From the IMG/VR virus record IMGVR_UViG_3300044568_003163, positions 186,001 to 250,000 of that record: a stretch of DNA of 64,000 bases; one strand, written 5' to 3'. Under the pieces are notes generated by a model that was not told the DNA's origin, did not search any database, and was given only the letters and a program-made list of their open reading frames with translations. The position numbers and the translations under genes are program-made. Below are positions 18,415 through 59,136 of this stretch, one piece after another; position 1 is the stretch's first letter; the number at the start of each line of letters is the position of its first letter.

Positions 18415-18987
18415 CTAAATTATTTCTAAAAAGGTTTTGTCAGGTACTACTGCAGATATACTTCCTTCGTCTTCTGCAATATTCGTATAATAGAATCCTG
18501 ACTTTGCATTTCCGGCTTTAAGGGCTCTCATCATCATACCATTAGCTCTCATATCACTATGTGGTTTATTAGGAGTATTAGACATAGAACCTATTATTTT
18601 AACAGGAAATACTATAGGCTTGCATTTCATAGAAACCTTTGTACGATCAGAATAAGTTGCAACTTCTCCTCTTTGAGTAGGATAATAATCTTCTTCTGGT
18701 ACATCACTACCTGCATTATAACCAGTTATACACCATTTGCCTTGTTTTTGTAAAGCTCTTAGTGTAGCTTTACCGGCTAATAAAGTTTTACCGTATTCAG
18801 TTTTTCCTTCCCATCCACCAATTGCTGGAACTCCTATTCTAGCTTCTAAGGCTTCTGTTGCTGCCAATTTAGTTCCAATATGAATTCCATTCTTACCTTC
18901 AAGGTTTTTGTCGGTAGATCCATGATAGTATTGAGTTACATTATATGATTCGTTGATGAATTGGTTATATGTAGGTAAATTTTTCAT
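18415..18987 (-). CDS. Putative ADP-ribosyltransferase-like protein (ART-PolyVal-like) with capsid-targeting-like N-terminus
   Basis: YYHGS, GIHIGT, GFYYTNIAEDEGSISAVV; N-terminus MKNLPTYNQFINE. Confidence 0.6.
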   Translation of the reverse strand: MKNLPTYNQFINESYNVTQYYHGSTDKNLEGKNGIHIGTKLAATEALEARIGVPAIGGWEGKTEYGKTLLAGKATLRALQKQGKWCITGYNAGSDVPEEDYYPTQRGEVATYSDRTKVSMKCKPIVFPVKIIGSMSNTPNKPHSDMRANGMMMRALKAGNAKSGFYYTNIAEDEGSISAVVPDKTFLEII

Positions 18988-19724
18988 TATGCTTGTAATT
19001 CGTTGAAAACTTGTTCTATTTTTTTGATTAAAGGATTTCTTACAATATCTTCATCAGAAAGTGCAATACATCCGAATTCTTCTACTTTAGAAAATTTCTC
19101 CATTATCATAGGTAGTGATGAATTTTTCTTCATCTTAAGGTCAATCTGTCCGGTGTCTCCTAGGAAAATCATCTTACAATTAGAACCTATACGGGTCATA
19201 ATAGTACGCATGTTGTCATGAGTGATATTTTGACATTCGTCTATTAATACTATACAATCATCGAAATTAATTCCTCTAAGGAATGCTATTGGCATCACTT
19301 CGATTGAGCCATTATCTCTAAGAGTTTTAGTTATAGAACGACCAACAATTTTTTCAAAGTTGTGAATGAATGAGTAAATATAAGGCTCCATCTTTTCATC
19401 AAGAGTTCCTTTTAAGAAACCAATCTCTTCATCTTTTAATGTAGTAACCGACTTAACGATATAAATCTTTTTGTATCTTTGATCGTTTTTAAACAGCTTA
19501 AGAGCTTGAGCGCAAGCAACATAAGTTTTTCCAGTTCCAGCAGGACCTGAACAGATTACTATTTCTTTATCTTCAATATATGAAGCAAACAGTTTTTGGT
19601 TTGGGTTTTTTGCCTTTAGTTCGACTTTTACTTTAGTAAGTGTGCCGTTTTTAGGTGCAGTCATAATAGATTCTAGAACTTGTTGTTCTTCCTCTTCAGT
19701 CAATTTCTTTCTACGATTACTCAT
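18987..19724 (-). CDS. phoH: PhoH family ATPase
   Basis: GPAGTGKT, MPIAFLRGINF, IDECQN, RIG, GDTGQID, DIVRNP. Confidence 0.93.
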   Translation of the reverse strand: MSNRRKKLTEEEEQQVLESIMTAPKNGTLTKVKVELKAKNPNQKLFASYIEDKEIVICSGPAGTGKTYVACAQALKLFKNDQRYKKIYIVKSVTTLKDEEIGFLKGTLDEKMEPYIYSFIHNFEKIVGRSITKTLRDNGSIEVMPIAFLRGINFDDCIVLIDECQNITHDNMRTIMTRIGSNCKMIFLGDTGQIDLKMKKNSSLPMIMEKFSKVEEFGCIALSDEDIVRNPLIKKIEQVFNELQA

Positions 19725-19737
19725 AAATTTTTGTTTT

Positions 19738-22700
19738 TTAGAACATAGATACTTTAGTCTTAACTGTAACTTGAGATAAAGCAGCTACCATAGCAGTTTC
19801 TATATCTCTTGCGGATATAGAAGCTCCTGGTTTAGAAGATGCATGAACTATTGGTTTTTCTTTCATAGCTTTTCCTGCAGGAGTAGCAGCAGTAGGAGTA
19901 GAAGCAGTTTCTGTACCACCAGTTGCACCAGCACTTGAACCTGAATCTTCATTAAGTTTCTTAAGTCCATTTAATAAATCTTCAAAAGCCTTTTCAATAG
20001 ATTCTGCAATTTTTTCACCAATAACTTCAGGCGATTTAGACATAATAGCTAATGATTTCATCATTGAGTCGGTTGTTGTAAGTTTTTCTAAGTCCATGCC
20101 ATTAACATGACCTTTGAATAACTGCATAGATTTTTGAATTTTGTCGAAATTCACTGCTACTTTGTCTAATGAATTTTTAGGAGAAGCCATCGTAACAATG
20201 TTAGATGTAAACTTGTCCATATATTCTAATTTCTTAGGTAAACCTTTATTTAATGCAGGATCGAATACTTTAAATATCGAACTTGTGAAATTTTGGAAAT
20301 TTAATGTGGCTTTATCGGTAGATTCTAATTTAGAAAATGTATTAATTCCAGTCGACAAAGATGACATTATTTTAATCATACTAGGTAAATTATTAAGAGC
20401 TCCATTAATAACGTCTTGATTTTTATTATAGAAATCTCCTACATTATAAACTTCAGTACCAAATAAAGAAAATCCCTTTAAATTATTATTAGCCTTTTCG
20501 AATATTGCTAAATCGGAAAATTTAACAATAGACTTAGACATATCTAATAATATCTTAATCATATTAGGTAGAGTACTAAGAGCTCCGTTGATAATACCTT
20601 TGTGAGTTTCGAAATATCCTCCTATTTTATAGATTCCTGTACCGAACGTAACTAATTTAGGTATAGTTTCAATTGCTTTATCGATACTATCTAATTTAGA
20701 AAATGTTGTAACTGATTCTGCTAATGAAGACATAGATTTTACCATTTTAGGTATAGAACTTATACCACCATCAATGGTTTCAGCATGTTGCTTATAAAAA
20801 ACTCCGACATTATAGATTCCTTTACCTATAATCATCATTACTGAATTGATAGTTGTTCCTGCCTTTTTAAGCATAGCATCTGTTATAGCTACTGGAGTTC
20901 CTGGTACTAATTTAGTATTTGTGCCTGTACCTACTGCAGTCATTGGAGTAATTGTACCAGTAGCAATTTTTATTACAGAATCAGTAACTTTAGCAACTAC
21001 ATCTCCAACTCCAGAGATAGCCTTTATACCTTTTGCGATATATCCATCTCCCCAGAAAGAAGAAGAATCATCCTCTTTTTTACCTATATCATAAAATCCA
21101 GTAGCTATAACTTTAAGGATATCCATTATTGTAGTAGCAGCATTAGTTAAATCTTTATCTGAAAGTATTTTTGGTTTTCCTGGTACTAGTTTAGCTTTAG
21201 AGGTTCCACCATCAATTAAATCAAAAGTGGGAATTTCTCGTTTAGCCATCATTAGAACTGAATCTACTATGTTTTTAAGATTTTCTCCTACTCCGGCTAA
21301 AGCTTTAACACCTCTAGCAATAAAACCACCAGCGAAAACTCCTTCAGAAGCTGCTTCATCTTTACCAATATCACTAAACGCTTTAGCTACAACTCCGATA
21401 ACAGTAGCTATACTTTTACCAGCAGATTCAATTTCCTTTTCACCTATTTTGGTTACACCTTTAGGTACTAATTTAGCTTTCGAAGTACCAGCATTAACAA
21501 CCTCAAATTCAACAAATTGCATAGTAGCAAATTGCTTTACACCTGCTGCAAGAGAAACAATAGTATCTCCTGAATTTTTAAGAGATGCAACACCAGCAGA
21601 AACAAAACCTCCGCCGAATACCATATCATATAAAGGATTTCCTGATGGTTGTCCTTTATCGAGTCTTCCTACTAATGCAAATGGTTCAGCTATTGCAGTA
21701 ATAACTTTTGCCATTCCGTTAGCCGCATTAGTAAAATCAGATTCACCTAATTTTCTTCTTGATTTTATAACTAACTTAGCTTTTGAAGTTCCTGCTCCAA
21801 TAACTTCATATTCATTTACTTCTAAATTTGCCCATGCTTTAACTCCTTCGGCTAATGACGATAGCACATTACCTGCCATACTAAGTGAAAGTATACCAGT
21901 CATCAAATCAATTGGATCTATATTAATTCCTAATTTTTTCTGTCTTTCTTTATCTGTAACTATTGTAAATGCTTTTGCAATAGAACCTATAGTTGATTCC
22001 AAAGCAACTCCATCTTCTGGAGTAAAACCAGAAGTTTTAAATATAGTTAGTCCTTTAGATATTGCAATTAATGCAATACCTGCACCTACCATTGCTGGAA
22101 CGGTTATGGTTAATAAGGCTGCTCTAGCTGCTGCTTGGCCAGCAAATTTAAGTCCTTCGAGAACTCCTCCAGGGAATCTACCTCCTAAGAATCCGTTAAT
22201 TATTGAACTTAATCCATATTCTAAATTATCTCCATCTTCTTTATTAAATCCAGCACTTTTAAATATCGCTAATGCACCAGTTATAGGTAATAAAGCTACC
22301 GATGCAGCTGTCATTGCAAGTGAACCTAATAGTATAAGAGGAGAACCTAAACCAGCAAGTGCCATAGAACCTGCCAAACTTTTAACTGATGCACCTAATG
22401 CATCTGCATCAGGAATTGTCATTCCGGCAGTTTTAAATACGGCAAGAGCACCGGTTATAGGTAATAGGGCTACTGAAGCTACTAACATCGCAGCTGAACC
22501 TAAAAGAATAAGTGGAGAACCTAAACCAGCAAGTGCCATTGAACCAGCTAAACTTGAAATAGATAAACCTAATGCTATCGCATCATCTTTTGTTACTCCT
22601 ATAGTTTTAAATACTGCAAGTGCTCCAGATATAACTAATAGAGAAACTCCAGCTAAAATCATCGAGGCTGAACCTAATGCAATAAATATAGCACCAGCAC

Positions 22701-25566
22701 CAGCAGCAGCCATTGCAAGTCCTAAACCTACAACAATTGCACCTAATATTAAAGCATCTTCAGTAGTAACACCTGCTTTTTTAAATACTAAAACTCCTGC
22801 AGCAATAACAACTAATGCAATTCCAGCAAGAATCATTACTCCAGCACCAAGACCAATTTCTACGAAATTATCTCCGGCTATTTTCATTGCTAGTCCTAGA
22901 CCTGCAACAATAGCACCTAATAAAATGGCATCGCCAACTCCTACACCGGATTCTTTAAATTTAGTAAGAGCGTATGCTAATATTAATATTGCAATAGAAG
23001 CAAATCCTAATACCATAGAACCTAATCCTATTTCTTTCCAATATTGACCGAAAAGATACATCGCCATTCCAGTTACGGCTAAAATTCCTCCTAGTAATAA
23101 AATATCTGTTACCTGTAAGTTTATTGATTGAAACATCGCTAAACTATATGTAAAGAATAAAATAGAAAGAGCCATAAAAGATAAAGCCAATGTTCCCATT
23201 GCAATAGTTTTCCAATTCTTACCTATTTCATATGCAATAAATGCAAGTAATCCTATTGCCAATCCAGTAAATAAAACTGCCATAGGTGTGACCGAAGCTG
23301 CAAATAACATTACAACTGATCCTATAATTAATGCACCGAGTGCAAATAAAGTTAATCCAATTACTGCTTTTGCAATATTTCCTAAGCTTTTATTTAACAT
23401 TTCTCCTACTTGTTTAGCAATCCAAGCAATAAGTCCAATCATTATACCAAAAGCTATTACTTGTAAAACTCCTGCTGCTCCTACTGATTGTGCAAAATGA
23501 ATAACTAATTGAGTTATCAATACAAGTCCTAACATAAATAAGGACATAGCTATTAGAGTAGATCCTTTCATATTAGCGCCACCCATAGCTTCAATAACCA
23601 TTGTAGTAGTTTTTGCTAATATATAAGTCATCAAACCAAATAATAATATAGATTTAAGAGACTGAGGTGGATTTTGCATTGCCTTTGAAATAACAACTAA
23701 AGATACTGCTTGTATTAAACCTGTCACTGCCGCAGATAAAAGATCCATATTAGTTAAATCAGTCTTAGACTCACCTACCTTTTTAGCTAACATAAGGGTT
23801 ATTTGAGATAGGATAAAAATAGCTCCAGTAAATAAAACAATATTTAATGCGACTGTCGTCAAATCGTTTTGAGTATTAAATGCCATAATTGTTGCTGCAG
23901 CAGTAACTAACACTCCAAGTATAGTAGCTATAACCATTACGGTTTGAACATCACCTTCAGTAACACCAGCATCTTTTATTCCTTGATTAACTGCAGTAAT
24001 TCGTTTAACCATAAATCCAAGAACCATAGCACCAACTAATACAAATGGAGCTAATAATCCGGCAATCACACACATAGTTAATAAAGTACCAATAGAAAAA
24101 CTTAATGCAACTACAAATACTGCAGCAGCTAAAATATTTTCTGAATCTTTAACTACTTCCGAAATACCTCCTATTAAAGTTTTAATTGCAATATTAGTGA
24201 TTTTCACACCTAATATAATAAAAGGATTCCAAATAGCAGCTCTCCTTAAAGCACTTATAAGAATATCGACACCATATGCTAATAATGTAAATGAAAGTAC
24301 ACTCTTAATCGCAGTTTCATTATCAATTCCTTTAGAAGTAAGTAACATTGCTCTAACTGCTCCAGATAGATCTTCAGCTCTTCTAGTTAACACATTAGGT
24401 TTACTAAATAGGCCAGAAAGAAATCCAGGAGTTAAGGCTTTTATTAATTTGCCTATATTAGAAGCCGATAATACATTAATAGCAAAAACAGATTTTATAA
24501 TAGTTTCTGGTATTAATCTTGAACCTGTCTTAAGTAAAATATTTACAGCCTTAGATAAATCTTCGGCTCTTCCAACCATAGATCCACCACCAAAAAGTTT
24601 AGATAAAAACGATTCAGAAAGAACTTTTATCAATTTACCAATATTAGAAGCCGATAACATTGCATATGCAGTTATAGATACTGCAGCAGTTTTAAGATTG
24701 ATTCGATTTCCTGCTTTTAATAAGATATTTGTTGCATCTGAAATATTTTGAGCTAATCTAGACCAAAAACGACTTAAAATAAAATTCTTTATCGTCATAT
24801 TCTTATTAAAGAATTCAACAAATTCACCTAGTTTCGAAGCTACTATTAAATTATATGCAGCAATAGAAACTGCCGCTTGAGTTAAATCTATTCCTTTACC
24901 GGCATTAAGTAATATTCGAGTCGTATTTGATATAACAATTGCAAAATCCTCATACATTGAACCGAAAATCATATTCTTAATAGTCAATGTAGAACCTAGA
25001 AAATCAACAAATTCTTTTAATTTAGACGAACTAATTAATCCATATATTAGTAATGAATTTGCCGCAGTTCCCATATCCACTTCTTCAGACACAGAAAGTA
25101 ATTTAATCATTGCTTGATTAAGATAACCTGCACCTTCTACTAGGAAATCTCCAAACAAATAAGAAACTGCTAATACTTTAACTAATTTCATTAATGCTTC
25201 GGGAATTGAACCTATGGCAGCAGCTAATCCACCATCATTGGCTGCACCTCCACCACCGACTGAGTCGCTTTTAGATAGTTTAGCAACTTTAATTTCAATA
25301 GATGATAATAAAGAGTTTTGTATAACCGAATGTTGTTCTATTCGATTCATAAGTTCTGCACTTATTCCAAATACGGATTTAAGGTCAGATAAAAGAGTTG
25401 TATGCTTCTTTAGCTCGAGAGAAACGTCATTTTTTACAACGGTTTCTATCGAGCCAAGAAGTATTAAGGAATTGTCTTCTGCTAGTTTAGTAGCACTTAC
25501 CATTGCATCCATCTTCTTAAGAATGGATAACATTGCTTGATTTACACCTTCTGCCCTAACAGCCAT
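19738..25566 (-). CDS. Tail tape measure protein (1942 aa)
   Basis: Very long Ala/Gly/Leu-rich helical protein with internal repeats, directly downstream of tail chaperone genes. Confidence 0.8.
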   Translation of the reverse strand: MAVRAEGVNQAMLSILKKMDAMVSATKLAEDNSLILLGSIETVVKNDVSLELKKHTTLLSDLKSVFGISAELMNRIEQHSVIQNSLLSSIEIKVAKLSKSDSVGGGGAANDGGLAAAIGSIPEALMKLVKVLAVSYLFGDFLVEGAGYLNQAMIKLLSVSEEVDMGTAANSLLIYGLISSSKLKEFVDFLGSTLTIKNMIFGSMYEDFAIVISNTTRILLNAGKGIDLTQAAVSIAAYNLIVASKLGEFVEFFNKNMTIKNFILSRFWSRLAQNISDATNILLKAGNRINLKTAAVSITAYAMLSASNIGKLIKVLSESFLSKLFGGGSMVGRAEDLSKAVNILLKTGSRLIPETIIKSVFAINVLSASNIGKLIKALTPGFLSGLFSKPNVLTRRAEDLSGAVRAMLLTSKGIDNETAIKSVLSFTLLAYGVDILISALRRAAIWNPFIILGVKITNIAIKTLIGGISEVVKDSENILAAAVFVVALSFSIGTLLTMCVIAGLLAPFVLVGAMVLGFMVKRITAVNQGIKDAGVTEGDVQTVMVIATILGVLVTAAATIMAFNTQNDLTTVALNIVLFTGAIFILSQITLMLAKKVGESKTDLTNMDLLSAAVTGLIQAVSLVVISKAMQNPPQSLKSILLFGLMTYILAKTTTMVIEAMGGANMKGSTLIAMSLFMLGLVLITQLVIHFAQSVGAAGVLQVIAFGIMIGLIAWIAKQVGEMLNKSLGNIAKAVIGLTLFALGALIIGSVVMLFAASVTPMAVLFTGLAIGLLAFIAYEIGKNWKTIAMGTLALSFMALSILFFTYSLAMFQSINLQVTDILLLGGILAVTGMAMYLFGQYWKEIGLGSMVLGFASIAILILAYALTKFKESGVGVGDAILLGAIVAGLGLAMKIAGDNFVEIGLGAGVMILAGIALVVIAAGVLVFKKAGVTTEDALILGAIVVGLGLAMAAAGAGAIFIALGSASMILAGVSLLVISGALAVFKTIGVTKDDAIALGLSISSLAGSMALAGLGSPLILLGSAAMLVASVALLPITGALAVFKTAGMTIPDADALGASVKSLAGSMALAGLGSPLILLGSLAMTAASVALLPITGALAIFKSAGFNKEDGDNLEYGLSSIINGFLGGRFPGGVLEGLKFAGQAAARAALLTITVPAMVGAGIALIAISKGLTIFKTSGFTPEDGVALESTIGSIAKAFTIVTDKERQKKLGINIDPIDLMTGILSLSMAGNVLSSLAEGVKAWANLEVNEYEVIGAGTSKAKLVIKSRRKLGESDFTNAANGMAKVITAIAEPFALVGRLDKGQPSGNPLYDMVFGGGFVSAGVASLKNSGDTIVSLAAGVKQFATMQFVEFEVVNAGTSKAKLVPKGVTKIGEKEIESAGKSIATVIGVVAKAFSDIGKDEAASEGVFAGGFIARGVKALAGVGENLKNIVDSVLMMAKREIPTFDLIDGGTSKAKLVPGKPKILSDKDLTNAATTIMDILKVIATGFYDIGKKEDDSSSFWGDGYIAKGIKAISGVGDVVAKVTDSVIKIATGTITPMTAVGTGTNTKLVPGTPVAITDAMLKKAGTTINSVMMIIGKGIYNVGVFYKQHAETIDGGISSIPKMVKSMSSLAESVTTFSKLDSIDKAIETIPKLVTFGTGIYKIGGYFETHKGIINGALSTLPNMIKILLDMSKSIVKFSDLAIFEKANNNLKGFSLFGTEVYNVGDFYNKNQDVINGALNNLPSMIKIMSSLSTGINTFSKLESTDKATLNFQNFTSSIFKVFDPALNKGLPKKLEYMDKFTSNIVTMASPKNSLDKVAVNFDKIQKSMQLFKGHVNGMDLEKLTTTDSMMKSLAIMSKSPEVIGEKIAESIEKAFEDLLNGLKKLNEDSGSSAGATGGTETASTPTAATPAGKAMKEKPIVHASSKPGASISARDIETAMVAALSQVTVKTKVSMF
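22260..22620 (-). repeat. Roughly 58-aa tandem repeat within tape measure
   Basis: SLAGSMALAGLGSPLILLGS occurs twice; DNA GAGAACCTAAACCAGCAAGTGCCAT at 22341 and 22515 (174 bp apart). Confidence 0.8.
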
Positions 25567-25574
25567 TTACGTTT

Positions 25575-26805: not shown

Positions 26806-26806
26806 A

Positions 26807-27046: not shown

Positions 27047-27187
27047 TAGTACTTGATTTTCTATTATATATCCAGGAAAGATAATAAAATAATATAAAAA
27101 TCAAATAATATTTTATCTAAAAAGTTGATGATATATGTGACATCTAAGGAACGGTATTATGAGATATAAGATATCATGTCAAACAAC

Positions 27188-39841: not shown

Positions 39842-40069
39842 TTATTTTATATTGCAAATAGCTTTAAATTCTTCATAGTCAAAATTAATTCCTTCTCTTT
39901 TAAAATCTTCAATTGATGCATCTACCATTTCTCTTTTATTTGCAGGATCTTTTACTCGATTAATAATTTCAGCAATTCCTTTAATCATAGGTTGTTCATC
40001 TCTAGTAGATAAATCAGATATAGATTTAGCTTCATTTAAGAATTCGTTAAATGTTAGTATGTGTCTCAT
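39842..40069 (-). CDS. Putative internal head protein
   Basis: N-terminus MRHILTFNEFLNE. Confidence 0.7.
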   Translation of the reverse strand: MRHILTFNEFLNEAKSISDLSTRDEQPMIKGIAEIINRVKDPANKREMVDASIEDFKREGINFDYEEFKAICNIK

Positions 40070-40401
40070 TATATAAGTTTAAATACAACTACAAAGTTGC
40101 TATCTTTAGGCCAAGGTTTAAAATCATCGTATGAATCAACAATTTCTATTTCAATTCCTTGACTACTTAAAGCTCCTTTTAATCTATCGGCAACACTTTG
40201 AGGAGATTGACCATGTCTGTAAAAATATCCACGTTTACCTACAATCGTACCATCTTTTTTAAATGTTAATTTATCTACTCCGGTTACAACAGATTCAAAA
40301 GCGTTTTTAAGTTTTTTCTTTTCGGCAGATGTTAAAATTTTATCAACCGACACTTCATCGGCTTCATTTATAAATTCGTTAAATTTTGGTATATGATTCA
40401 T
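40069..40401 (-). CDS. Putative internal head protein
   Basis: N-terminus MNHIPKFNEFINE; late box at 40417. Confidence 0.7.
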   Translation of the reverse strand: MNHIPKFNEFINEADEVSVDKILTSAEKKKLKNAFESVVTGVDKLTFKKDGTIVGKRGYFYRHGQSPQSVADRLKGALSSQGIEIEIVDSYDDFKPWPKDSNFVVVFKLI

Positions 40402-46723: not shown

Positions 46724-46724
46724 A

Positions 46725-50179: not shown

Positions 50180-50263
50180 AGTTCTTTGTTTTAATTAGAT
50201 ATGTAAATATAATCAATATTGCGGAAACTAAAAAACTTTAAATGTTAAAAATCTGTTAAAGTT

Positions 50264-50740: not shown

Positions 50741-50762
50741 AATGTGTAGTTTTAATTAGATA

Positions 50763-50821
50763 TGTAAATTTAATCAAATAATTAGAAACAAGGAAATTTA
50801 TTTCAATAAAGTTATTAACAA
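50763..50821 (-). promoter_or_regulatory. Early promoter TAAATTTACA with TTGTTAATAAC box (48-bp offset)
   Basis: Boxes at 50763-50772 and 50811-50821. Confidence 0.65.
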
Positions 50822-50822
50822 T

Positions 50823-50996: not shown

Positions 50997-51001
50997 AATA
51001 C

Positions 51002-51292: not shown

Positions 51293-51314
51293 AATGTGTA
51301 GTTTTAATTAGTTA

Positions 51315-51383
51315 TGTAAATATAAGCAAAAAATCCGACACTAGGAAATGTCGGATTAATTATTTTCAAAAAGTTATTAACAA
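51315..51383 (-). promoter_or_regulatory. Early promoter TATATTTACA, hairpin, and TTGTTAATAAC box (58-bp offset)
   Basis: Boxes at 51315-51324 and 51373-51383; CCGACA/TGTCGG hairpin between. Confidence 0.7.
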
Positions 51384-51384
51384 T

Positions 51385-51612
51385 TTATTGTTCGTTAGTA
51401 AAGAATTTTGTTACTTGGTCTAAGTTTTCGTTTGCTACTGAGATGTGGTCTTCTGCCCAATCATGTCCATTCTTTAAGATTTCGTCCATTTTAATAGGAT
51501 CCATAGCTAAAAGAATTTCAACATTTCTTTTGATGGTTTTAAGATTTCCAATTGTCATATAGTTTTCAGCCTTTTCGTTTACAAATTCACTGAATGTAGG
51601 TAAGTGTTCCAT
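51385..51612 (-). CDS. Putative internal head protein
   Basis: N-terminus MEHLPTFSEFVNE; GHDWAEDH motif. Confidence 0.75.
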   Translation of the reverse strand: MEHLPTFSEFVNEKAENYMTIGNLKTIKRNVEILLAMDPIKMDEILKNGHDWAEDHISVANENLDQVTKFFTNEQ

Positions 51613-52020
51613 TTACTTCAATAATTTTCTAATATTTTCAATAACTATTGATCGATGATTGATAACTGCCTGAGCTTCTTTAGGATGTCTTTGCATAAGT
51701 TTTATCGTTTCTCTTGCCCAATTTTCTATTTCCTTTGTTAGCTCAAGAGTTTTAGGCCAGGTTGAATCGTTAACGACATCAAAATCTGGATTACCTTCTA
51801 GTGATTCAATTCCAGTTTCTACGCTTTTATCGATGTTCGACCAATATCCACCTCCTTTAGAACTTATGATAGTTCCAACTGATACTTTTACTTTTCTAGT
51901 TCCTCTGATATTTTTAACTTCAGTGTCTTTATTAGCAATATATACATTCCAATATTCTCCACCTTTATCTAAAAATGTAGATTCATTTAAGAATTCTTCG
52001 TATGTAGGTAGTTTACTCAT
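51613..52020 (-). CDS. Putative internal head protein
   Basis: N-terminus MSKLPTYEEFLNE. Confidence 0.75.
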   Translation of the reverse strand: MSKLPTYEEFLNESTFLDKGGEYWNVYIANKDTEVKNIRGTRKVKVSVGTIISSKGGGYWSNIDKSVETGIESLEGNPDFDVVNDSTWPKTLELTKEIENWARETIKLMQRHPKEAQAVINHRSIVIENIRKLLK

Positions 52021-53516
52021 TATTTCTTTGTTTTCTTATTTTCAAATGTTATTCCAGCATGTGCACTTCCTTTAGCTTCACCTGGATGATATTCACCATC
52101 AAATGAAGTTACTACGAAAGTTTTATATGGCGATACTGAACAACCAATTCTTTCCATAAATTTACGATTAACTAAAAATTTAGTAGATTTATCTGTTCTA
52201 TTAACTAATGAAACCTGAACCTCTTTGTAAGTTTTACCTGCAAATGCAATATCCATTTCAATTATAGGCCTTTCATCTATATCGTTACCAACTTCTGCGT
52301 TAGAAATTCCAATTATCTGATGTACGTATTTTTTGCCGTTCAATTCCCAATTACACTGTTTACCATCTTCGCTAATTTTCATTTTATCATAAGTCATAGA
52401 ACATGAAAGTGAACCGTTTCCAGTATCAAATTTAGCAACAACATCACCAATTCCAGGAATTGTAATTACTTCTCTAAATCCAATAACTCTACGAGAACGA
52501 ATCCAATTTTGTCTATCTGATAGAAAATCGATGATGTCTTTAATAACATCTACACCAGTAGCTTTTTTTAATCCTTGTGTACCTGGAGATGAGTTAACTT
52601 CCAGTACATAGTTTTTACCTGTTTTCTCATCAACGATAATATCAACTCCACACCAATTACAACCTACTGCCTTAGCCGATTCGATTGCAATTCTTTCTTG
52701 TTCTGGTGTTAATTTAGTTTTTTCAACAGAACCACCTAATGAATAGTTAGTTCTAAAGTCTTTATCGACTTTGTTTCTTCTCATATAACCTAAAAGTACC
52801 GAGTCAGTATCTTCTGGTTTAGGCGAATTGAAACGTTTAGTTAAAACGTGAATACGTAAGTCATATTCTGATTCGATTTTTTCTTGTATAAGAGTTTCTA
52901 CAGTTGGATCTACTTTCCATAAAGTTTGTAATACTGATTTAAGAGATGCCAATGAATCTATAATAGAAACTCCAATTCCTTGAGAACCAGAAAGCATTTT
53001 AAGAATTACAGGAAATTGTCCGCCGATTTGTTCAACTGCCGGTTCGATAGAATCTTCTCCATCGACCATTGCCATTTTAGGAACTGGAAGACCAGCATCC
53101 ATAAGCATTTTCGAAGTAACGTATTTGTTTTCGCATGCTAAAACTGAACTTAGTGTGTTTACTACAAAAAAGTTATTGTCTTCTAATTGAGATACAATAT
53201 CTCGAGTATAAGTATTTCTAACGATTCCTCTACGAGTTAAAATCGCAGTATCTTCGGAATCAATTTTAAAGGGTTTCTTGGTTTTATCAACGATAGTAAA
53301 ATAATCTCCATCAGTACTTTTAGTTAACGAACATGTGTTAACGTCAATGATACGGAATTCAATTCCACGTTTTTTACATTCTTTCTCAACTGCAGGAACG
53401 GTATATGATTCCTCACTGATATTTGAAAGGAGTACAACCTTAACAGGATTTTTAGGTGTTGATTTTGTAGCCTCATTAATTACAAATTCGTTAAAGTATG
53501 CGAGACGGTTTTTCAT
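52020..53516 (-). CDS. rimK: RimK-family ATP-grasp ligase fused to RimB-like retropepsin protease
   Basis: CENKY...GLPVPK, FPVILKMLSGSQGIGV, LIQEKI, DLRIHV, DFRTNYSLGG, CGVDI, VLEVNSSPG; then VIGFREVI, AKFDTGN, FLVNRKFM. Confidence 0.9.
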   Translation of the reverse strand: MKNRLAYFNEFVINEATKSTPKNPVKVVLLSNISEESYTVPAVEKECKKRGIEFRIIDVNTCSLTKSTDGDYFTIVDKTKKPFKIDSEDTAILTRRGIVRNTYTRDIVSQLEDNNFFVVNTLSSVLACENKYVTSKMLMDAGLPVPKMAMVDGEDSIEPAVEQIGGQFPVILKMLSGSQGIGVSIIDSLASLKSVLQTLWKVDPTVETLIQEKIESEYDLRIHVLTKRFNSPKPEDTDSVLLGYMRRNKVDKDFRTNYSLGGSVEKTKLTPEQERIAIESAKAVGCNWCGVDIIVDEKTGKNYVLEVNSSPGTQGLKKATGVDVIKDIIDFLSDRQNWIRSRRVIGFREVITIPGIGDVVAKFDTGNGSLSCSMTYDKMKISEDGKQCNWELNGKKYVHQIIGISNAEVGNDIDERPIIEMDIAFAGKTYKEVQVSLVNRTDKSTKFLVNRKFMERIGCSVSPYKTFVVTSFDGEYHPGEAKGSAHAGITFENKKTKK

Positions 53517-54000
53517 TTTTGCGTATATATTTTATGAATGATTTCTGATTATCTATCATCATTCTCTTACATTTTTCAGTAAAAGCTAATGAAGATTCAA
53601 TAACTCGTTGGTCTATTTTTTCGTTACCTTTAAGGTAGTATTTAAAACATTTTTCACAAGTAAAATTACTTGGAATGTATGTATCTATTCGAGATTGAAT
53701 CTCTTTATTGCAATAAGCACAGTTCCAATCAAATATCTTATACGAATCTTTTACTAATGAATAAGAAGATATGTCTTTTGACCCTGGTTGAACAAATGGC
53801 CTATTCAAATGAGATACTCTTATTCTTCCATCTTCGATCCTAAAGATGGCATTTATAAAAAGGTCATCATCAGCATATTTCTTAACTACTGGATTTTCCT
53901 TTAGTATTCGTTGATGCCTAGGTGGAAGTCCTTTAAGTACGATTCCATATTTAGTAGGAGTTTTACCTAAGTTCTGTCTTTTTATATGATAATTAGCCAT
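53491..54000 (-). CDS. Zinc-finger-containing hypothetical protein
   Basis: CAYC...CEKC. Confidence 0.7.
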   Translation of the reverse strand: MANYHIKRQNLGKTPTKYGIVLKGLPPRHQRILKENPVVKKYADDDLFINAIFRIEDGRIRVSHLNRPFVQPGSKDISSYSLVKDSYKIFDWNCAYCNKEIQSRIDTYIPSNFTCEKCFKYYLKGNEKIDQRVIESSLAFTEKCKRMMIDNQKSFIKYIRKNEKPSRIL

Positions 54001-56104
54001 TTATAGGATATTCATTCCATAAATTATTTAATCGTTCCTCTGCTAATGAAAGTATTGCGGATATTGTCCATAAATCAGTAGAATTACCTTCTTCGGCAGT
54101 TTCTTTATATTTATCGATAGCTGCTTTAGCTATATCTAAATTAGCTTGAATTTTATCTACTTCAGTTTGTAGGATTTCCTTTTTAGCTTCATCGGTTTCA
54201 TTCTTAAGCTCTTCTTTCTTTGAATCTAATCCGGTTTTGATTGCATCGTACTTTTCAGTTGCAGTACGAAGTTTAAATTCTTCGATAGTTTCTGTTTGTT
54301 CTTCTTCAGGAGCTTCTTTAGGAGATTCACTAGTAGCTTTCTCTAATTTTTCTGGATCAGTCTTTTTTGCTGATGCTTCACCTTGCTTTTCTGCTTCGTC
54401 TGACTTTTTTTCTAAGTCCTTCATCATTTCTATAGCCTTGTCTAATTGACCTTTAAGAGCTTTTTTCTTTTTATCACTAGGAATTAAAGTAGCAAGTTGA
54501 GTAAGAAATTCAACACGATTTTTAGCACGTTGTTTCGATATGTACAACCACGAAAAGAAATTAGCTTTACCTAATAGACCTCCAACTAATTCGTTGGTAG
54601 CATCTTTTTGATTTTCTACTGCTGAATCAATATCTTTCAATTGAGAAACATATGAATCGGTAGCAATTTCTACTTGTTCTCTAAAAGCTTCAAGTTTTTC
54701 TTCGTCAGTCATATCCGTATCTTCGCTTTTGAAATTATCTTTAACGTCATCAACTTCTACTTGTGCCTTTCTTTTAGCAGTAGCCGCATCAGATATTTCC
54801 TTTTCTAGAGCTCTAATTTCAGCAGCATCTTCTTTTGGATCTAAATTAGCCTTTTCTTTTCTAAGTCTATTAAGTTTTTTATCGGCATTAGATAAATTAG
54901 ACTTAGCTTGCTCTAATTTTTCTTTTGTCTTTTCGTTAGACTTTTTAATGTTTTTAAGTTCTTCTTCGTCTGAATCTTCTTCCTCTTCGGCATTTATATC
55001 GTCAGCAGTATCATCAGTTGCAGTTGCACCAGTAGGTCCAGTAGTTCCTTCTGGTTCTTTTTCGGTCGATGTAGTTGATCCGGTAGGACCTGTAGTTCCA
55101 TCAATTGCAGTAGTTCCTTCTGGTTCCCTTTCAGAAGATGAAGTTGCACCAGTAGGTCCAGTAGTTCCTTCTGGGTTTTTAACTTCTGGCTCTTCTGCTG
55201 GAGTTTCTTCTTGCTTTAATTTTTCTATTTCGGCTTTAAGATTATCATAAGCTTCTTTTGCAGATTGTTTACCTTCAACAGATGAATTATCTAATTCTAA
55301 TTTAAGTCGATCTAAATCAGCTAATTTAGACGCAAGTAAAGCTTCTTTTGCTTTTTTCTCTAATTCGGCTTTATCTAATTGGTCTTCTCCATCTTCTTTA
55401 AGATTAGAAATTTCCTTTTTGATTTTAGCAAATTTTTCATAGTTAACATAAGATTCCTGTCTTGCTTTTGCTATTTTCTTAGCGTCATTAGCATCGTCAG
55501 CCTTCTTAATGTCTTTCTGTTCAGCAGATAATTTAGCATTTTCTGCTTGATATTTTTTATGAGTTACTTCTAATTCTCGTCTCTTTTCTGGATCGTCGAC
55601 AACAGAAGTTATTTTTTTCTTAATTGATTGAATTTCGTCTTTAACCTTAGCCTTAATTTTACTAATCTTTTCTAATTTATCAGTATCTGAAGCACCTTTA
55701 GGTTGTGGAGTAGTTTTAGGTTCAGTTGGTTTAGGAGTTTCCTTTGCCTTAGGTTCTACCTTAGGCTTAGGTGCATCTTTTTTCTTTGGTTCAACTTTGG
55801 CTTTCTTTGCAGGAGTTTTATCCGGTGCTTTAGGTTTAACTTTTTTAGATACCTTCCTAGCTTGTTTTCTTGCTGCTCTTTTTTGTGCAGCAGTTTGAAC
55901 TTCAACTAAAGCAATATATTGTGGTAGACTTGAAAAGTCATATTCTTTTAATGATTCAAATACATCTCCTAATGTGGCATCCTCATCGACAAAAATATCG
56001 AAATCTTCACATATCGTTTCAAAAAGAGATTCTAACAGATCTAAGTATATTTGATCGTTTACTTCTTCTTCGTATTTTTCTAATAAATAGTTGTTTAATT
56101 TCAT
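53993..56104 (-). CDS. Highly charged coiled-coil protein, probable prohead core/internal protein, with GTTGPTG repeats
   Basis: Lys/Glu/Asp-rich; acidic N-terminus with L-x-E sites; co-transcribed downstream of the capsid gene region. Confidence 0.7.
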   Translation of the reverse strand: MKLNNYLLEKYEEEVNDQIYLDLLESLFETICEDFDIFVDEDATLGDVFESLKEYDFSSLPQYIALVEVQTAAQKRAARKQARKVSKKVKPKAPDKTPAKKAKVEPKKKDAPKPKVEPKAKETPKPTEPKTTPQPKGASDTDKLEKISKIKAKVKDEIQSIKKKITSVVDDPEKRRELEVTHKKYQAENAKLSAEQKDIKKADDANDAKKIAKARQESYVNYEKFAKIKKEISNLKEDGEDQLDKAELEKKAKEALLASKLADLDRLKLELDNSSVEGKQSAKEAYDNLKAEIEKLKQEETPAEEPEVKNPEGTTGPTGATSSSEREPEGTTAIDGTTGPTGSTTSTEKEPEGTTGPTGATATDDTADDINAEEEEDSDEEELKNIKKSNEKTKEKLEQAKSNLSNADKKLNRLRKEKANLDPKEDAAEIRALEKEISDAATAKRKAQVEVDDVKDNFKSEDTDMTDEEKLEAFREQVEIATDSYVSQLKDIDSAVENQKDATNELVGGLLGKANFFSWLYISKQRAKNRVEFLTQLATLIPSDKKKKALKGQLDKAIEMMKDLEKKSDEAEKQGEASAKKTDPEKLEKATSESPKEAPEEEQTETIEEFKLRTATEKYDAIKTGLDSKKEELKNETDEAKKEILQTEVDKIQANLDIAKAAIDKYKETAEEGNSTDLWTISAILSLAEERLNNLWNEYPING
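55022..55174. repeat. 33-bp exact direct repeat (55022-55054, 55142-55174) with a degenerate middle copy
   Basis: AGTTGCACCAGTAGGTCCAGTAGTTCCTTCTGG twice, encoding PEGTTGPTGAT. Confidence 0.9.
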
Positions 56105-56105
56105 T

Positions 56106-56675
56106 TTAGTTTTCTGAGTTTAATGATGGAGCTGATGGTTTTTCTAATTCAGTCGAAGGAGGAGTCATTGAAGGTATAATACTTCCTAATTCAGGAATTT
56201 CTTTATTTTCTAATTCAGCTAATTTAACTTGCAATTTAACCACTTTCTTAAAGCCTTTTAGTTTTTCTAGCTCTAATTTACGTTCTTGTTCTAAAGATGA
56301 TTTAATTTTTCCTTTTTTAAATAAGAATGCAATGTAAATTCCAGTAAGTGCTGCACCGACGGCTAATCCTTTAACAATACCTTTAGCTGTACTAATTGCA
56401 GTTCCTGCAGCAGTATCAAATTCAGCTTCACCTCCGGCTTCAGCATAAGCTTCGTTTAAATCTTCTAAAAAAGATTCATATAGATAATCGTATGAGGATG
56501 AACTTTCGTTTATTACTGATTCACTAATTCCATCACCAGAAAATAATAACAAAAATCTAACGATCTCTTCATATTCTTTTTGTGCCGGTGTATAATTATA
56601 CTGAGTGCATAATTTTCGGTAATCTTTCATCTCGTTTTGAATTCCGAGAACGTTTGTAGGTAGGATAAAAGTCAT
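56106..56675 (-). CDS. Putative prohead core or virion protein
   Basis: Multiple I/L-x-E sites (VINE, LYE, LNE); late box at 56707. Confidence 0.6.
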   Translation of the reverse strand: MTFILPTNVLGIQNEMKDYRKLCTQYNYTPAQKEYEEIVRFLLLFSGDGISESVINESSSSYDYLYESFLEDLNEAYAEAGGEAEFDTAAGTAISTAKGIVKGLAVGAALTGIYIAFLFKKGKIKSSLEQERKLELEKLKGFKKVVKLQVKLAELENKEIPELGSIIPSMTPPSTELEKPSAPSLNSEN

Positions 56676-56733
56676 AATATGATGTAGGGTTACTATTCAA
56701 TTTAATTATATATCTCTAAAATTTGTGACAAAA

Positions 56734-56761
56734 AAAGAGCTCTTCGTAAGAAGAGCTCTTT
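56734..56761 (-). terminator. Strong terminator after major capsid gene
   Basis: AAAGAGCTCTTC-GTAA-GAAGAGCTCTTT 12-bp stem followed by a T-run. Confidence 0.85.
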
Positions 56762-56782
56762 GAAATATATGAAGTATAAAGA

Positions 56783-58405
56783 TTATACTAAAGAACCAAG
56801 AAGGTTAGACATAAATACACCTGAAGTGATATACATAGTTTCTGGTTTGAAACCTGCTTCAACTAAAGCGTATCTTGATTTAACAGCTACTTTAGGAGCC
56901 ATAGTTCCTTCAGCAATTGTTTGTACTGATTCAGCCATTAAGTAAGGCATGAATACTAAACCTGGAGAGTTACCATCACCTTTACGTCCAACTAAGAAAC
57001 GAGTATCGTTCCAAGCCATGTTAGGATCGTTGTAGATAGCAAGACCTGCAACAGTTCCAATTGGGTAAAGTGAACCACTCATTTGGTTAATAGTATTAGC
57101 CATAGGAGCAGGAACGAAACCAGCTATATCTTGTAGGGCAGAACATACTTGACCGTTTGTAACGATGAAAGTAGCTGGACCTCTACGACCTCTAATTGCA
57201 ATAAGGTTAGCGATTGCAAGGATCTTAGACATAATTTTTCTCTGACGAGTTGAAAGATTCTCAGAAGCTGAGTTTGTAACCTCAGAAGCAAGAATAGTTG
57301 CAGCTCTAAGAGTAGTATCTTGGATGTAAGCACCAAAGTTAGTTTGAGTGTTAGCAGATGTACCAGATACAACAATTGAAGTAGCACCAATGTTCAAGAA
57401 GAAGTTGATTCCTTGAGAGTTAACAACATTTTTGTGGTTAGTTTCTCCAAGAGCAAATAATCTAGAAAGGATGTTTTTGTTGATTGATTGAGTCAATTCA
57501 TTGATAAGTACTGATTCTACTTGAGATACAGCATCTACTCCGAATTGTTTCAAATCTTGAACTTGCTCTCTAGTAACAGCAGCTGCAACTTGGAAAGTTT
57601 TAGCTTCAACTGATTTGTTGAAAAGACTTAAGTTCATTACGTTGTCTGGAGTAGACTCACCTAAAGATCTAGAATATGGATCGTTAATATCATCTCCAGT
57701 ATAATCGTTGTTAGTTAAAGCTTGACCTGAGAATCCAGTGATGTGGTCTTCTAAAGCTTTTACTAATTCTACGTTTAATCCAGAAGTAGCACCAGTTACA
57801 CCTGAGATACCTGAAGCACCTAAGATAGTAGTAAAAGTTGAAAGGATAGTAGCACCAGAAAGAGTACCTCTAACGTGGAAGATTGGATAACCATCTAAAC
57901 GAGAAGATCCTACATAAGCAAGAGTAACTCCATTAGTTGAAGCAGAAGTTCCACCAACTACAAACGAAGGAACTGTAGCAGAACCATAGTTTACTTTGAT
58001 TAATAATGGAGAATTTGTAGTAGAAGCAGTTTGACCACCAGCATATACGAAGTCTAAGTAAGTTAATACTCCCATTGGACCAGGCATTGGTACAACAGGT
58101 ACTAAGTCAAGACCAATAGTTTGAGCAGCAACTTGCATTGCTAATGGAAGAAGTGTGTGAGCTTTATCACCTGAACCAGCTTCTTGACCTGGGAAACCAG
58201 CTTGAGTACCTGGATCTCCAGGGAAACGAGTTGCACCCATACCGTTTACAGAACCTAATTGAGCTAAGCTATTGTTTTCATACAATTCATGATAATGACA
58301 GTATTTAGACATCCACTCTACTCTATTACGCTCTTGAATTCCTGTAGTAGACTCAATGATTGGAGCCCATTTACCGAATATTTCTTGTTCGTTAATTAAA
58401 TACAT
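56783..58405 (-). CDS. gp23: Major capsid protein (gp23-like)
   Basis: KWAPII, LVPVVPMPGPMG, VEAKTFQVAAAVTREQVQDL, SVLINELTQSIN, FIVTN, GLVFMPY, KSRYAL. Confidence 0.95.
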   Translation of the reverse strand: MYLINEQEIFGKWAPIIESTTGIQERNRVEWMSKYCHYHELYENNSLAQLGSVNGMGATRFPGDPGTQAGFPGQEAGSGDKAHTLLPLAMQVAAQTIGLDLVPVVPMPGPMGVLTYLDFVYAGGQTASTTNSPLLIKVNYGSATVPSFVVGGTSASTNGVTLAYVGSSRLDGYPIFHVRGTLSGATILSTFTTILGASGISGVTGATSGLNVELVKALEDHITGFSGQALTNNDYTGDDINDPYSRSLGESTPDNVMNLSLFNKSVEAKTFQVAAAVTREQVQDLKQFGVDAVSQVESVLINELTQSINKNILSRLFALGETNHKNVVNSQGINFFLNIGATSIVVSGTSANTQTNFGAYIQDTTLRAATILASEVTNSASENLSTRQRKIMSKILAIANLIAIRGRRGPATFIVTNGQVCSALQDIAGFVPAPMANTINQMSGSLYPIGTVAGLAIYNDPNMAWNDTRFLVGRKGDGNSPGLVFMPYLMAESVQTIAEGTMAPKVAVKSRYALVEAGFKPETMYITSGVFMSNLLGSLV

Positions 58406-58515
58406 TTAAAATGTTTTATTTTGTTTTATGTTTTGATTTACGCTGATGCTTTTTGTGTTTTAGCAGTATTTAGCGTTTAAGTATATATCTAAGTCTCCTT
58501 AGATTTTTATCTATT

Positions 58516-59136
58516 TTATAATAAGTTAACCTTTTCTAAAGATTCTAAGTTAGATTCAATTCCGTCTATTAGATTCGATATTAAAGTTTCGTATTGTTTA
58601 ACATATTCATCAGTTAATATAGAAGCTCTTTCTGGATTATTTGCAAACATACTCCAATCAATACCTGAAGGTTTTAATAAAGGAGAATTTTCATCTGCAG
58701 CCGGTTTAGAATTTACTGAACCTTTTCTCATTTCTAACCCAAAATCATTATACCAGAAAGTCATTGCATTTCTTACATCAGTTATGTCTAACCTTGGTTC
58801 TTTTGATCGGTTTAAATTAGGAGCAAGAGTTCCGTAATTTTGATGTTCTTTGACAATTACTTTACGAATTTTAATAAGTTTTGAATATCCCATCATTGGT
58901 GAATATTCGATACAAAAAAGAGCTTGACCCTTAGAATTGTAAAGTTGTACACTTTCATAAGAAGGAGCTGTTTGTATACCATATTTAGAAAATATTCTTT
59001 TCAAATCTTTTCCTAGAAAATCTTTTGTGATTTTCGAAACTTGTTTGGCTATATCTAATTGATTAGGTTCTAACGAAGCTTTTTCATTAAGAATGGATTC
59101 ATTAATAAATTCAGCAAATGTTAATAAATTCTTCAT
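58516..59136 (-). CDS. Putative internal head protein
   Basis: N-terminus MKNLLTFAEFINESILNE. Confidence 0.7.
   Translation of the reverse strand: MKNLLTFAEFINESILNEKASLEPNQLDIAKQVSKITKDFLGKDLKRIFSKYGIQTAPSYESVQLYNSKGQALFCIEYSPMMGYSKLIKIRKVIVKEHQNYGTLAPNLNRSKEPRLDITDVRNAMTFWYNDFGLEMRKGSVNSKPAADENSPLLKPSGIDWSMFANNPERASILTDEYVKQYETLISNLIDGIESNLESLEKVNLL

Follow-up and report, generated by a model that had tools for sequence, protein, structure and literature searches.

Why would seven apparently unrelated proteins of an uncultivated phage begin with nearly the same peptide? The question arose in a window of 64,000 nucleotides (positions 186,001 to 250,000 of IMG/VR record IMGVR_UViG_3300044568_003163; coordinates below are those of this window unless stated otherwise), which belongs to a 294-kb lake phage with a T4-like head. 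The initial annotation listed seven such N-termini, and proposed that they are a portable capsid-loading tag comparable to the capsid-targeting sequence of phage T4. The observation holds, all seven N-termini being found on the minus strand where they had been reported, and it is larger than was first seen, since these are only seven of roughly 50 copies in the genome. The tagged ORFs are as follows, a slash marking the putative cut site here and below.

18415..18987 (minus strand), ORF of 190 aa, leader MKNLPTYNQFINE encoded at 18949-18987, no family match
39842..40069 (minus strand), ORF of 75 aa, leader MRHILTFNEFLNE encoded at 40031-40069
40069..40401 (minus strand), ORF of 110 aa, leader MNHIPKFNEFINE encoded at 40363-40401
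51385..51612 (minus strand), ORF of 75 aa, leader MEHLPTFSEFVNE, last gene of the late operon that follows the capsid gene
51613..52020 (minus strand), ORF of 135 aa, leader MSKLPTYEEFLNE, same operon
52020..53516 (minus strand), RimK-fold ATP-grasp ligase of 498 aa, leader variant with a one-residue insertion (MKNRLAYFNEFVINE/A), a Lys-rich linker to residue ~25, the RimK fold at 26-335 and an extra beta-rich domain at ~345-450; conserved across the clade, nearly always with a leader
58516..59136 (minus strand), ORF of 206 aa between the protease and capsid genes, leader MKNLLTFAEFINE/SILNE/K with a double site; a relative has a positional equivalent with the same double site

Genome-wide, 48 ORFs carry the 13-residue leader M-K-N-[IL]-P-T-[FY]-E-[ED]-F-[ILV]-N-E, or 55 of 452 when seven variants with insertions of one or two residues are included, and the Glu is at residue 13 in 38 of the 48. 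To see whether this could be due to chance, we built an 11-column profile from the strict copies of the genome. At 12 bits or more it finds 47 hits with the Glu within the first 20 residues and 3 internal hits, one of which is a mis-called start. N-terminal positions make up only 7.6% of the 89,512 positions scored, and from the internal rate about 0.25 N-terminal hits would be expected. A strict DNA pattern gives 31 hits on the coding strand and 0 in the reversed-pattern control. Three partial versions had also been listed in the initial annotation. The one at 15477 (..LPTFKKFSKE) has the aromatic core but no [ILV]NE, and its ORF overlaps the neighbouring one, while the one at 39002, a polysaccharide deacetylase, is not convincing. 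The third is a plausible T4-style variant:

6470..6709 (minus strand), ORF of 79 aa starting MSFKKFFQFILE, possible T4-style variant of the leader, below the profile cut-off

One conceivable explanation is that the shared start is a nucleotide-level feature, either a translation-initiation enhancer or the conserved edge of mobile gene cassettes that recombine at gene 5' ends. Codons 2-3 are A-rich (AAA AAC), which can favour initiation, and the genes sit in cassette-like arrays that turn over. However, mean pairwise nucleotide identity in the leader is 0.72, 0.75 and 0.49 at codon positions 1, 2 and 3, compared to 0.38 upstream of the ATG and 0.31 downstream of the Glu codon, against a random expectation of 0.32. 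Synonymous codons are used almost evenly (Asn codons split 17 AAT to 16 AAC), and the best-conserved residues are 7-13 rather than the first codons. Conservation is thus in the peptide and not in the DNA, and we regard this explanation as very unlikely.

With the leader removed, no two tagged proteins hit each other by BLASTP at E<1e-3, in agreement with the proposal that the proteins are otherwise unrelated. The tagged genes do occur in tandem arrays, for example 19 of 21 consecutive genes at genome 165-181.5 kb, and one might therefore suppose an old paralogous family whose bodies have diverged beyond recognition, with only the N-terminal segment retained. Lengths nevertheless range from 67 to 498 aa, the members include a RimK fold and a cytidylyltransferase-like domain, so the folds are unrelated, and a RimK homologue without the leader exists. 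Even under this view, which also appears very unlikely, the leader would need its own selective explanation.

The head module of the phage is T4-like, and the features relevant here are the following.

61178..62791 (minus strand), portal protein (T4 gp20 family), with ..GINE/DQ at residues 50-52, which is IAE/DQ in the relative LR756500.1
59208..61121 (minus strand), prohead protease (S77/T4 gp21 family, residues ~12-160) fused to a helical scaffold-like tail of ~470 residues, with 8-10 [ILVM]NE sites, the first at 164-166 just after the protease domain
56783..58405 (minus strand), major capsid protein (T4 gp23 family), N-terminus MYLINE/ conserved as (x)LINE in relatives; the likely propeptide site ..HELYE/N aligns with ..TINE/N of phage PTm1
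56706..56713 (minus strand), late-type promoter box ATATATAA, 30 nt before the next feature; similar boxes lie at 58481-58488 (capsid gene), 61140-61147 (protease) and 62814-62821 (portal)
56106..56675 (minus strand), ORF of 189 aa heading the late operon after the capsid gene, with two internal sites (VINE/S, DLNE/A), candidate core protein

The portal, protease and capsid protein match PF07230, PF03420 (47.8 bits) and PF07068, respectively, and the protease aligns to the T4 gp21 structure 5JBL (E 7.8e-6) across the His (..LDHP) and Ser (..SSR) motifs. The protein encoded between the protease and capsid genes is not demonstrably the scaffold; the scaffold-like part is the C-terminal 470 residues of the protease protein. 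The initial annotation had noted LINE in the capsid protein and INE, VNE and LNE in the scaffold, and both hold: the capsid protein starts MYLINE and VNE, INE and LNE sites are found in the protease-scaffold protein.

The leader closely resembles that of T4. In NC_000866 both ipII and ipIII start MKTYQEFIAE, as had been stated, and this sequence scores 15.9 bits on the profile of the present phage, against the 12-bit cut-off. One local copy reads ..KKLPTYEEFIAE/A, and T4 gp67 starts MLLEFKQFLYE/A. The Glu that ends the leader is invariant, P3 is I, L or V, and P1' is Ser in 20 and Ala in 11 of 48 leaders. The pattern [ILV]NE[SAGNKD] occurs 3.29 times per 1000 aa in tagged bodies and 0.61 times in untagged proteins, a 5-fold enrichment, and 9 of 49 tagged proteins have a second [ILV]NE within 15 residues (4-9 residues later), compared to 1.85% of background windows. 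The only untagged protein with three or more [ILV]NE is the protease-scaffold fusion. These are sequence patterns only, and not every [ILV]NE need be cut; the LINE site of the capsid protein, for instance, would give a propeptide of only 6 residues. The protease-scaffold of PTm1 also has 9 such sites, and PTm1 appears to share the [ILV]NE specificity, yet it has no tagged proteins. The cut site alone therefore does not imply a cargo system.

As the strongest evidence concerns the cut site, docking and injection are inferred, and PTm1 has the site in its scaffold but no tagged cargo, it is possible that the leader is a protease-removed propeptide that controls activity or assembly but is not an address. 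The tagged proteins would then be head-assembly or head-decoration factors, or enzymes kept inactive until cleaved, most of them not delivered into the host. A cut site, however, needs only 3-4 residues, whereas here 7-12 residues upstream are conserved in the same [FY]xxF[ILV] register as the T4 leader, whose targeting role was shown experimentally (PMC9958956). Moreover, fifty unrelated, fast-turnover and mostly orphan proteins do not look like assembly factors. We consider this alternative unlikely.

The cargo behaves like the internal proteins of T-even phages, and it turns over between relatives while the leader stays. Only 2 of 48 tagged proteins have even a weak hit in the nearest genome, LR756500.1, which shares 102 of 452 ORFs overall, and the ORFs after the RimK gene differ between this genome and the related genome L179. 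Only three of 49 (RimK, a cytidylyltransferase-like domain and KTSC) match a Pfam family and a few more have weak PHROG hits, while most match nothing; there are weak links to "internal head protein" families.

The leader is an appended module in the RimK-fold protein. Orthologues at 53-97% identity nearly all keep a leader ending NE/A before a variable linker. In the AlphaFold model residues 1-20 have pLDDT below 50, with a helix at 8-17, detached from a confident RimK fold (TM 0.90 to 7QYS). The homologue of cyanophage S-CAM8 starts at the equivalent of residue 25 and so lacks the leader, while that of pelagiphage Mosig starts MQVQPFKNYLEE/A. The only hint that such cargo is present in virions is that a homologue 33.5% identical to the RimK-fold protein was detected by LC-MS/MS in YerA41 particles, in a list that also holds many likely contaminants.

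The initial annotation stated that several tagged genes follow late boxes. This holds only at the level of operons, and only on a rough promoter model: tagged genes sit in operons headed by the same ATATA[TA]A box as the portal, protease and capsid genes, and 41 of 49 are late-type compared to 193 of 430 overall. Part of the biggest array (8 of 49 tagged genes) lies nearest to host-type (early-type) promoter boxes, so timing is not uniformly late.

The leader is not restricted to this genome. At least 119 IMG/VR stretches carry it, and about 135 of 150 matches are true ORF starts and show conservation at residues 2-6 that the pattern did not impose. Strict copies number 6-17 per genome in seven relatives and 1-2 in four others, with none in PTm1, while reversed-pattern controls give 0-1. 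Of 17 large tag-bearing contigs, 11 encode S77 in frames of 606-730 aa, including all six estimated at 74% complete or more, though the match of the 74% record is below the Pfam cut-off.

Another alternative is that the leader addresses proteins to some other destination or partner, such as a phage-built compartment, a chaperone or an unfoldase-protease, or an export route, and that its resemblance to the T4 leader is convergent. The link between leader and capsid is indirect, and a complex prediction of the protease domain with the leader gave no answer either way. The leader is, however, acidic and amphipathic, without the hydrophobic core of 10 or more residues after a basic N-region expected of Sec, Tat or lipoprotein signals, and no hydrophobic stretch was found in the mature parts. 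It co-occurs with S77 protease-scaffold fusions, its terminal tripeptide is concentrated in that scaffold, and tagged genes are embedded in the head gene module. This alternative therefore seems improbable.

We conclude with fair confidence that the peptide is a capsid-targeting leader of the phage T4 type, and the capsid-loading interpretation of the initial annotation is well supported in silico, as every sequence-level prediction that could be examined held. In this view residues 7-11 ([FY]-x-x-F-[ILV]) would form one face of a short amphipathic helix, which during head assembly would dock the protein onto the scaffolding core, here largely the C-terminal tail of the protease protein. Once the shell closes, the S77/gp21-family protease would cut after the invariant Glu ([ILV]-N-E/S or A), and the same enzyme would chop the scaffold tail and trim the capsid and portal proteins. 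The matured cargo would stay among the DNA and most likely enter the host with it, as the internal proteins of T4 do. What the sequences themselves establish is the presence of the leader on about 50 unrelated proteins, its strictly N-terminal position, its conservation as a peptide, its match to the T4 leader, its co-occurrence with the S77 protease-scaffold fusion and the enrichment of its terminal tripeptide in that scaffold; docking, cleavage, packaging and injection are all inferred, for a phage known only from lake metagenomes. About 50 putative cargo species is also far beyond the 3-10 known for T-even phages, and perhaps not all are packaged.

The closest known system is the capsid-targeting sequence of T4 IPII and IPIII (Mullaney and Black 1996). 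T4 leaders direct unrelated internal proteins and foreign proteins into the core and are removed by gp21 (PMC9958956, PMC5694885, PMC3012670, PMC12373910). Both leaders are N-terminal, are shared by otherwise unrelated proteins, have the same register of aromatic-x-x-Phe-aliphatic-x-Glu followed by Ala or Ser, and go with the same family of protease, portal and capsid protein. The present leader has 13 residues instead of 10, with an extra N-[IL]-P after Met-Lys, P2 is almost always Asn, protease and scaffold are one polypeptide, and the host is probably Bacteroidota and not Enterobacteria. What is new is above all the scale, which is unprecedented, with about 50 carriers per genome compared to 2-3 in T4. 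The hypervariable internal-protein (ip) loci of T-even phages likewise hold small, mostly orphan proteins that share only the leader, sit in arrays and turn over quickly between related genomes. Ip1-3 are injected inhibitors of GmrSD type IV restriction enzymes (PMC12373910, PMC3012670), whereas no target or anti-defence role is known for any member here, and the present set also includes large proteins and enzymes, namely the RimK-fold ligase and a cytidylyltransferase-like protein. The giant phages phiKZ, 201phi2-1 and SPN3US also have many head-internal proteins processed by a related protease that cuts after Glu (PMC5694885, PMC10052503). Their propeptides, of ejection and inner-body proteins, are mostly over 100 residues, are not one shared short peptide and are cut at S/A/G-x-E, so that P3 is small and not aliphatic as here, and only about 8 of 50 head proteins are cleaved in SPN3US. 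The cargo-loading peptides of encapsulins are also short and portable and load unrelated enzymes into an HK97-fold shell, but the likeness is of mechanism only: they are usually C-terminal, bind the shell protein directly and are not cleaved, and there is no evolutionary link.

A more far-reaching possibility, which we put forward tentatively and hold to be somewhat less likely than not, is that the T4 leader is an ancient cargo address. It appears to be shared by T4-like heads from Enterobacteria phages, through pelagiphages and cyanophages, to lake jumbo phages that probably infect Bacteroidota. One freshwater clade may have expanded it so that about 12% of the genes of a phage (roughly 50 unrelated proteins, 10 kDa to 55 kDa) are packaged and injected, including a clade-conserved RimK-type poly-glutamate ligase that would act on host or phage proteins at the moment of entry. 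If so, the "injectome" of thousands of uncultivated phages could be listed by a regular expression.

Proteins that phages inject with their DNA are the first phage products the cell meets; in T4 all three are anti-restriction factors, and such proteins are normally found only by virion proteomics of cultured phages. If the leader works as in T4, it gives a sequence-only list of packaged proteins for a large group of uncultivated jumbo phages, running from 6 to about 50 proteins per genome in the genomes examined here. Nearly all are orphans, so they form a concentrated pool of candidate anti-defence or host-takeover factors. It would also offer a second, naturally validated loading tag for engineering protein delivery by phage heads, define the likely specificity of the protease in this clade ([ILV]-N-E/S or A), flag a conserved RimK-fold ligase as an unexpected capsid passenger, and show that the T4 leader is much older and more widespread than the T-even phages.

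The single contig of 294,034 bp, of which the window covers bases 186,001-250,000, has a GC content of 32.8%, carries about 95% of its genes on the minus strand and is rated 91% complete by CheckV. It belongs to a jumbo phage known only from lake-water metagenomes, and it is present in many lake-water DNA runs. The only RNA run covers just the 3' part of a relative's capsid gene and so says nothing about tagged genes. A T4-type head module lies within the window, composed as follows:
61178-62791, portal protein of the gp20 family
59208-61121, a 637-aa protein whose first ~160 residues are a prohead protease of the S77/gp21 family and whose remainder is a helical scaffold-like tail
58516-59136, a small tagged ORF
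56783-58405, capsid protein of the gp23 family

The large terminase, a sheath-like protein and topoisomerase II are also encoded in the window, and the protease aligns to the T4 gp21 crystal structure 5JBL across the His and Ser motifs. A megablast search of the head region against GenBank phages returned no match. The nearest capsid proteins are from an uncultured 462-kb phage, LR756500.1 (56% identity), the Lak Prevotella phages (36%) and Tenacibaculum phages pT24 and PTm1 (32-34%), which, together with host-type promoter boxes of the TAnnTTTG kind, points to a Bacteroidota host. Identity with the bS21 phages (PMC9723584) was rejected because no S21 gene is present in this genome. Among other genes of the window, a 395-aa ORF (10407-11594, minus strand) matches the RuBisCO large-chain catalytic domain (PF00016, E 1.9e-33), which is unusual for a phage and could represent a RuBisCO-like (form IV) protein. 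An Fpg/Nei-type DNA glycosylase (43806-44624, minus strand; PF01149 and PF06831) and a polysaccharide deacetylase (38298-39002, minus strand; PF01522) are also encoded, the N-terminus of the latter only loosely resembling the leader. A 1942-aa ORF without a Pfam match (19738-25566, minus strand) lies immediately upstream of the tagged ORF at 18415-18987.

All seven N-terminal peptides listed in the initial annotation were confirmed in place, so that its observation holds, but they are only the visible part of a much larger set. A profile built from the strict copies finds 48 tagged ORFs genome-wide, including one (g405) that was first scored as internal because of a mis-called start. Seven more, among them the RimK-like protein at 52020-53516, carry the same leader with one to four extra residues before NE, giving 55 of 452 ORFs with 10,280 residues of mature protein. 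The hits are overwhelmingly N-terminal, 47 against 3 internal (the latter including g405), although N-terminal positions make up only 7.6% of those scored, and Glu is at residue 13 in 38 of the 48. The tagged genes cluster in arrays, one of which comprises 19 of 21 consecutive genes at genome 165-181.5 kb, just upstream of the window. Leader-like peptides also occur inside proteins or frames. One, ..KVPTFKKFINE/S (a slash marks the putative cut), has its Glu at residue 256 of a tagged 395-aa protein (genome 171723-172910; positions 5726-6910 of stretch L046). The other, ..HESFDEFVNE/S, starts near codon 93 of a stop-free frame of 258 codons at genome ~183.9 kb and scored below the 12-bit cut-off in the called 256-aa ORF. 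These could be fused cassettes, long propeptides or internal processing sites.

The conservation is in the peptide rather than in the DNA. Mean pairwise nucleotide identity within the leader is 0.72 and 0.75 at first and second codon positions but 0.49 at third positions, whereas the 30 nt upstream of the ATG score 0.38 and the 30 nt after the Glu codon 0.31, against a random expectation of 0.32. Synonymous codons are used almost evenly (AAT 17 to AAC 16, and TTC 22 to TTT 12). This excludes a DNA repeat, a recombination edge or a nucleotide-level translation signal as the main explanation. A signal peptide was likewise rejected.

The carriers are unrelated, in that no tagged protein hits another at E<1e-3 once the leader is removed. 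This, together with the existence of a RimK homologue without the leader (see below), led us to reject a single paralogous family. Of the 49 tagged proteins scanned (the 48 plus the RimK-like one), very few match any family in Pfam or PHROGs: the RimK-type ATP-grasp protein, one protein with a cytidylyltransferase-like domain, one KTSC domain and a few weak PHROG hits, including a weak hit (E 6e-4) to a PHROG called 'internal head protein'. Structure-atlas look-ups for two large tagged orphans gave low-confidence models (pLDDT 0.48-0.54) without trustworthy structural matches, and an 'IpIV internal head protein' neighbour scoring 0.74 is a lead only. Only 2 of 48 have even a weak hit in LR756500.1, which shares 102 of 452 ORFs overall, and both hits are to larger, untagged proteins.

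The T4 genes ipII and ipIII, read from NC_000866, both begin MKTYQEFIAE, which scores 15.9 bits on this phage's own profile, above the 12-bit cut-off. The shared register is aromatic-x-x-Phe-aliphatic-x-Glu followed by Ala or Ser, and one local copy reads ..LPTYEEFIAE/A. The T4 ORF at the position of gp67, a core protein, near position 114210 of the same record, starts MLLEFKQFLYE/A and fits the same pattern, with Ala after the Glu. In T4 this leader directs otherwise unrelated internal proteins, and foreign proteins such as GFP, into the scaffolding core and is then removed by gp21; the internal proteins are injected, and Ip1-3 block type IV restriction enzymes (PMC9958956, PMC5694885, PMC3012670, PMC12373910).

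The leader ends [ILV]-N-E, and the next residue is Ser in 20 and Ala in 11 of 48 leaders, against background frequencies of 6.9% and 5.7%. Nine of 49 tagged proteins have a second [ILV]NE within 15 residues, for example ..FVNE/SIINE/G, whereas only 1.85% of background 15-residue windows contain the tripeptide. [ILV]NE followed by a small or polar residue is 5.4-fold denser in tagged bodies than in untagged proteins. The only untagged protein with three or more [ILV]NE is the protease-scaffold protein, which has 8-10, the first at residues 164-166, exactly where the protease domain ends. The capsid protein begins MYLINE, and this LINE is kept in LR756500.1 and in the relative L179, while the portal has GINE/DQ, which is GIAE/DQ in LR756500.1. 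The protease-scaffold protein of PTm1 has nine such sites too, but PTm1, considered as a cultured model, shows no N-terminal enrichment (3.7% against 4.3% background). A complex prediction of the protease domain (residues 1-200) with a leader peptide (residues 1-30) gave a score of 0.00, which is no evidence either way.

A DNA pattern specifying only Met1, [FY]7, [DE]9, Phe10, Asn12 and Glu13 hit at least 119 IMG/VR stretches. About 135 of 150 matches are true ORF starts and show conservation at residues 2-6 (K-[HNK]-[IV]-[KPQ]-[LT]) that the pattern did not impose, with up to six tagged ORFs in 3 kb. Strict counts are 31 in this genome and range from 0 to 17 in the 12 other records searched: seven relatives have 6-17, four relatives have 1-2 and PTm1 has none, while reversed-pattern controls give 0-1. 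With a looser pattern that also fits T4, T4 has 3, pelagiphage Mosig 1, cyanophage S-CAM8 1 and PTm1 0, compared with 27 in this genome and 9 in LR756500.1. Each lineage has its own flavour of residues 2-6, for example MKYIKxY.. in LR756500.1, while residues 7-13 are constant. Eleven of 17 large tag-bearing contigs encode S77 in open frames of 606-730 aa. These include all six estimated at 74% complete or more, although the match of the 74% record scores below Pfam's cut-off, and the six without a match are 25-69% complete. The IMG/VR record IMGVR_UViG_3300044568_006268, classed as a provirus and considered for an analysis of micro-diversity, is 100% identical to bases 1-129,487 of this genome and is thus a duplicate fragment rather than an independent relative. 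In the DNA run that best holds the phage, several contigs break or diverge at the 3' end of the last tagged ORF (window ~51346-51387), and one weak joint skips 51385-55019. This may be strain variation at the cassette boundary, but the support is thin.

The leader behaves as an appended module in the RimK-like protein, which has more than 850 homologues at 53-97% identity, many on contigs over 200 kb. It is a core gene of the clade and sits four genes after the capsid gene in conserved synteny. Nearly all homologues begin with the leader or an insertion variant ending NE/A, followed by a variable Lys-rich linker and then the first strand of the RimK fold. In the AlphaFold model (mean pLDDT 82.6), residues 1-20 are below 50, with a predicted helix at 8-17, whereas the body superposes on RimK crystal structures (TM 0.90 to 7QYS) and is followed by an extra C-terminal beta domain. 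The cyanophage S-CAM8 homologue begins at the equivalent of residue 25 and therefore has no leader, while the pelagiphage Mosig homologue begins MQVQPFKNYLEE followed by Ala. The YerA41 homologue was detected in purified particles, but that proteome also lists many replication enzymes, so this is weak support.

Two promoter-like classes recur in the genome. One is a host-type box, T[TA]ATATTTG, preceded by a hairpin and a GTTAATAACTT element; the other is a late-type box, ATATA[TA]A, found before the portal, protease, capsid, sheath and other structural genes. The first class occurs in repeated intergenic cassettes made of GTTAATAACTT, a hairpin and a box of the form T[TA]ATATTT[GA][TC] about 25-35 nt before the start codon, reminiscent of the promoter-stem-loop regulatory cassettes of T4-type phages (PMC2839356), at these window positions and about 25 more genome-wide:
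50180-50263, intergenic cassette
50741-50822, intergenic cassette
51293-51384, intergenic cassette

The late box at 56706-56713 heads an operon that runs through the RimK gene and the two tagged ORFs at 51385-52020, and another late box heads a run of six tagged ORFs just upstream of the portal. Since 41 of 48 tagged genes lie 25 nt or less from the upstream gene, promoters could be inferred only at the level of operons, and a first motif set missed the capsid gene's own promoter. On a refined but rough nearest-promoter model, 41 of 49 tagged genes are late-type against 193 of 430 overall, while part of the largest array is nearest to host-type boxes. This count rests on a low-information AT-rich box and is only suggestive.

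The reading of the shared peptide as a capsid-loading tag, put forward in the initial annotation, is supported. We consider, with fairly high confidence, that the best explanation is a T4-type capsid-targeting leader removed by the S77 protease. The existence of the leader, the selection on its peptide, its match to T4, its association with the protease-scaffold and its portability are established at the level of sequence, whereas docking, cleavage, packaging and injection are inferred. No version of the peptide string searched was found in the literature, and none of the papers on T4 heads, huge phages or moraphages that we examined mentions such a leader outside the T-evens, so that we found no description of this system in the searchable literature. 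Compared with known systems, it is the T4 CTS/internal-protein system in a distant, uncultivated lineage, differing in leader length and P2 residue, in the protease-scaffold fusion and, above all, in scale. In this view, the leader marks a very large, fast-evolving set of head-internal proteins that are probably injected.
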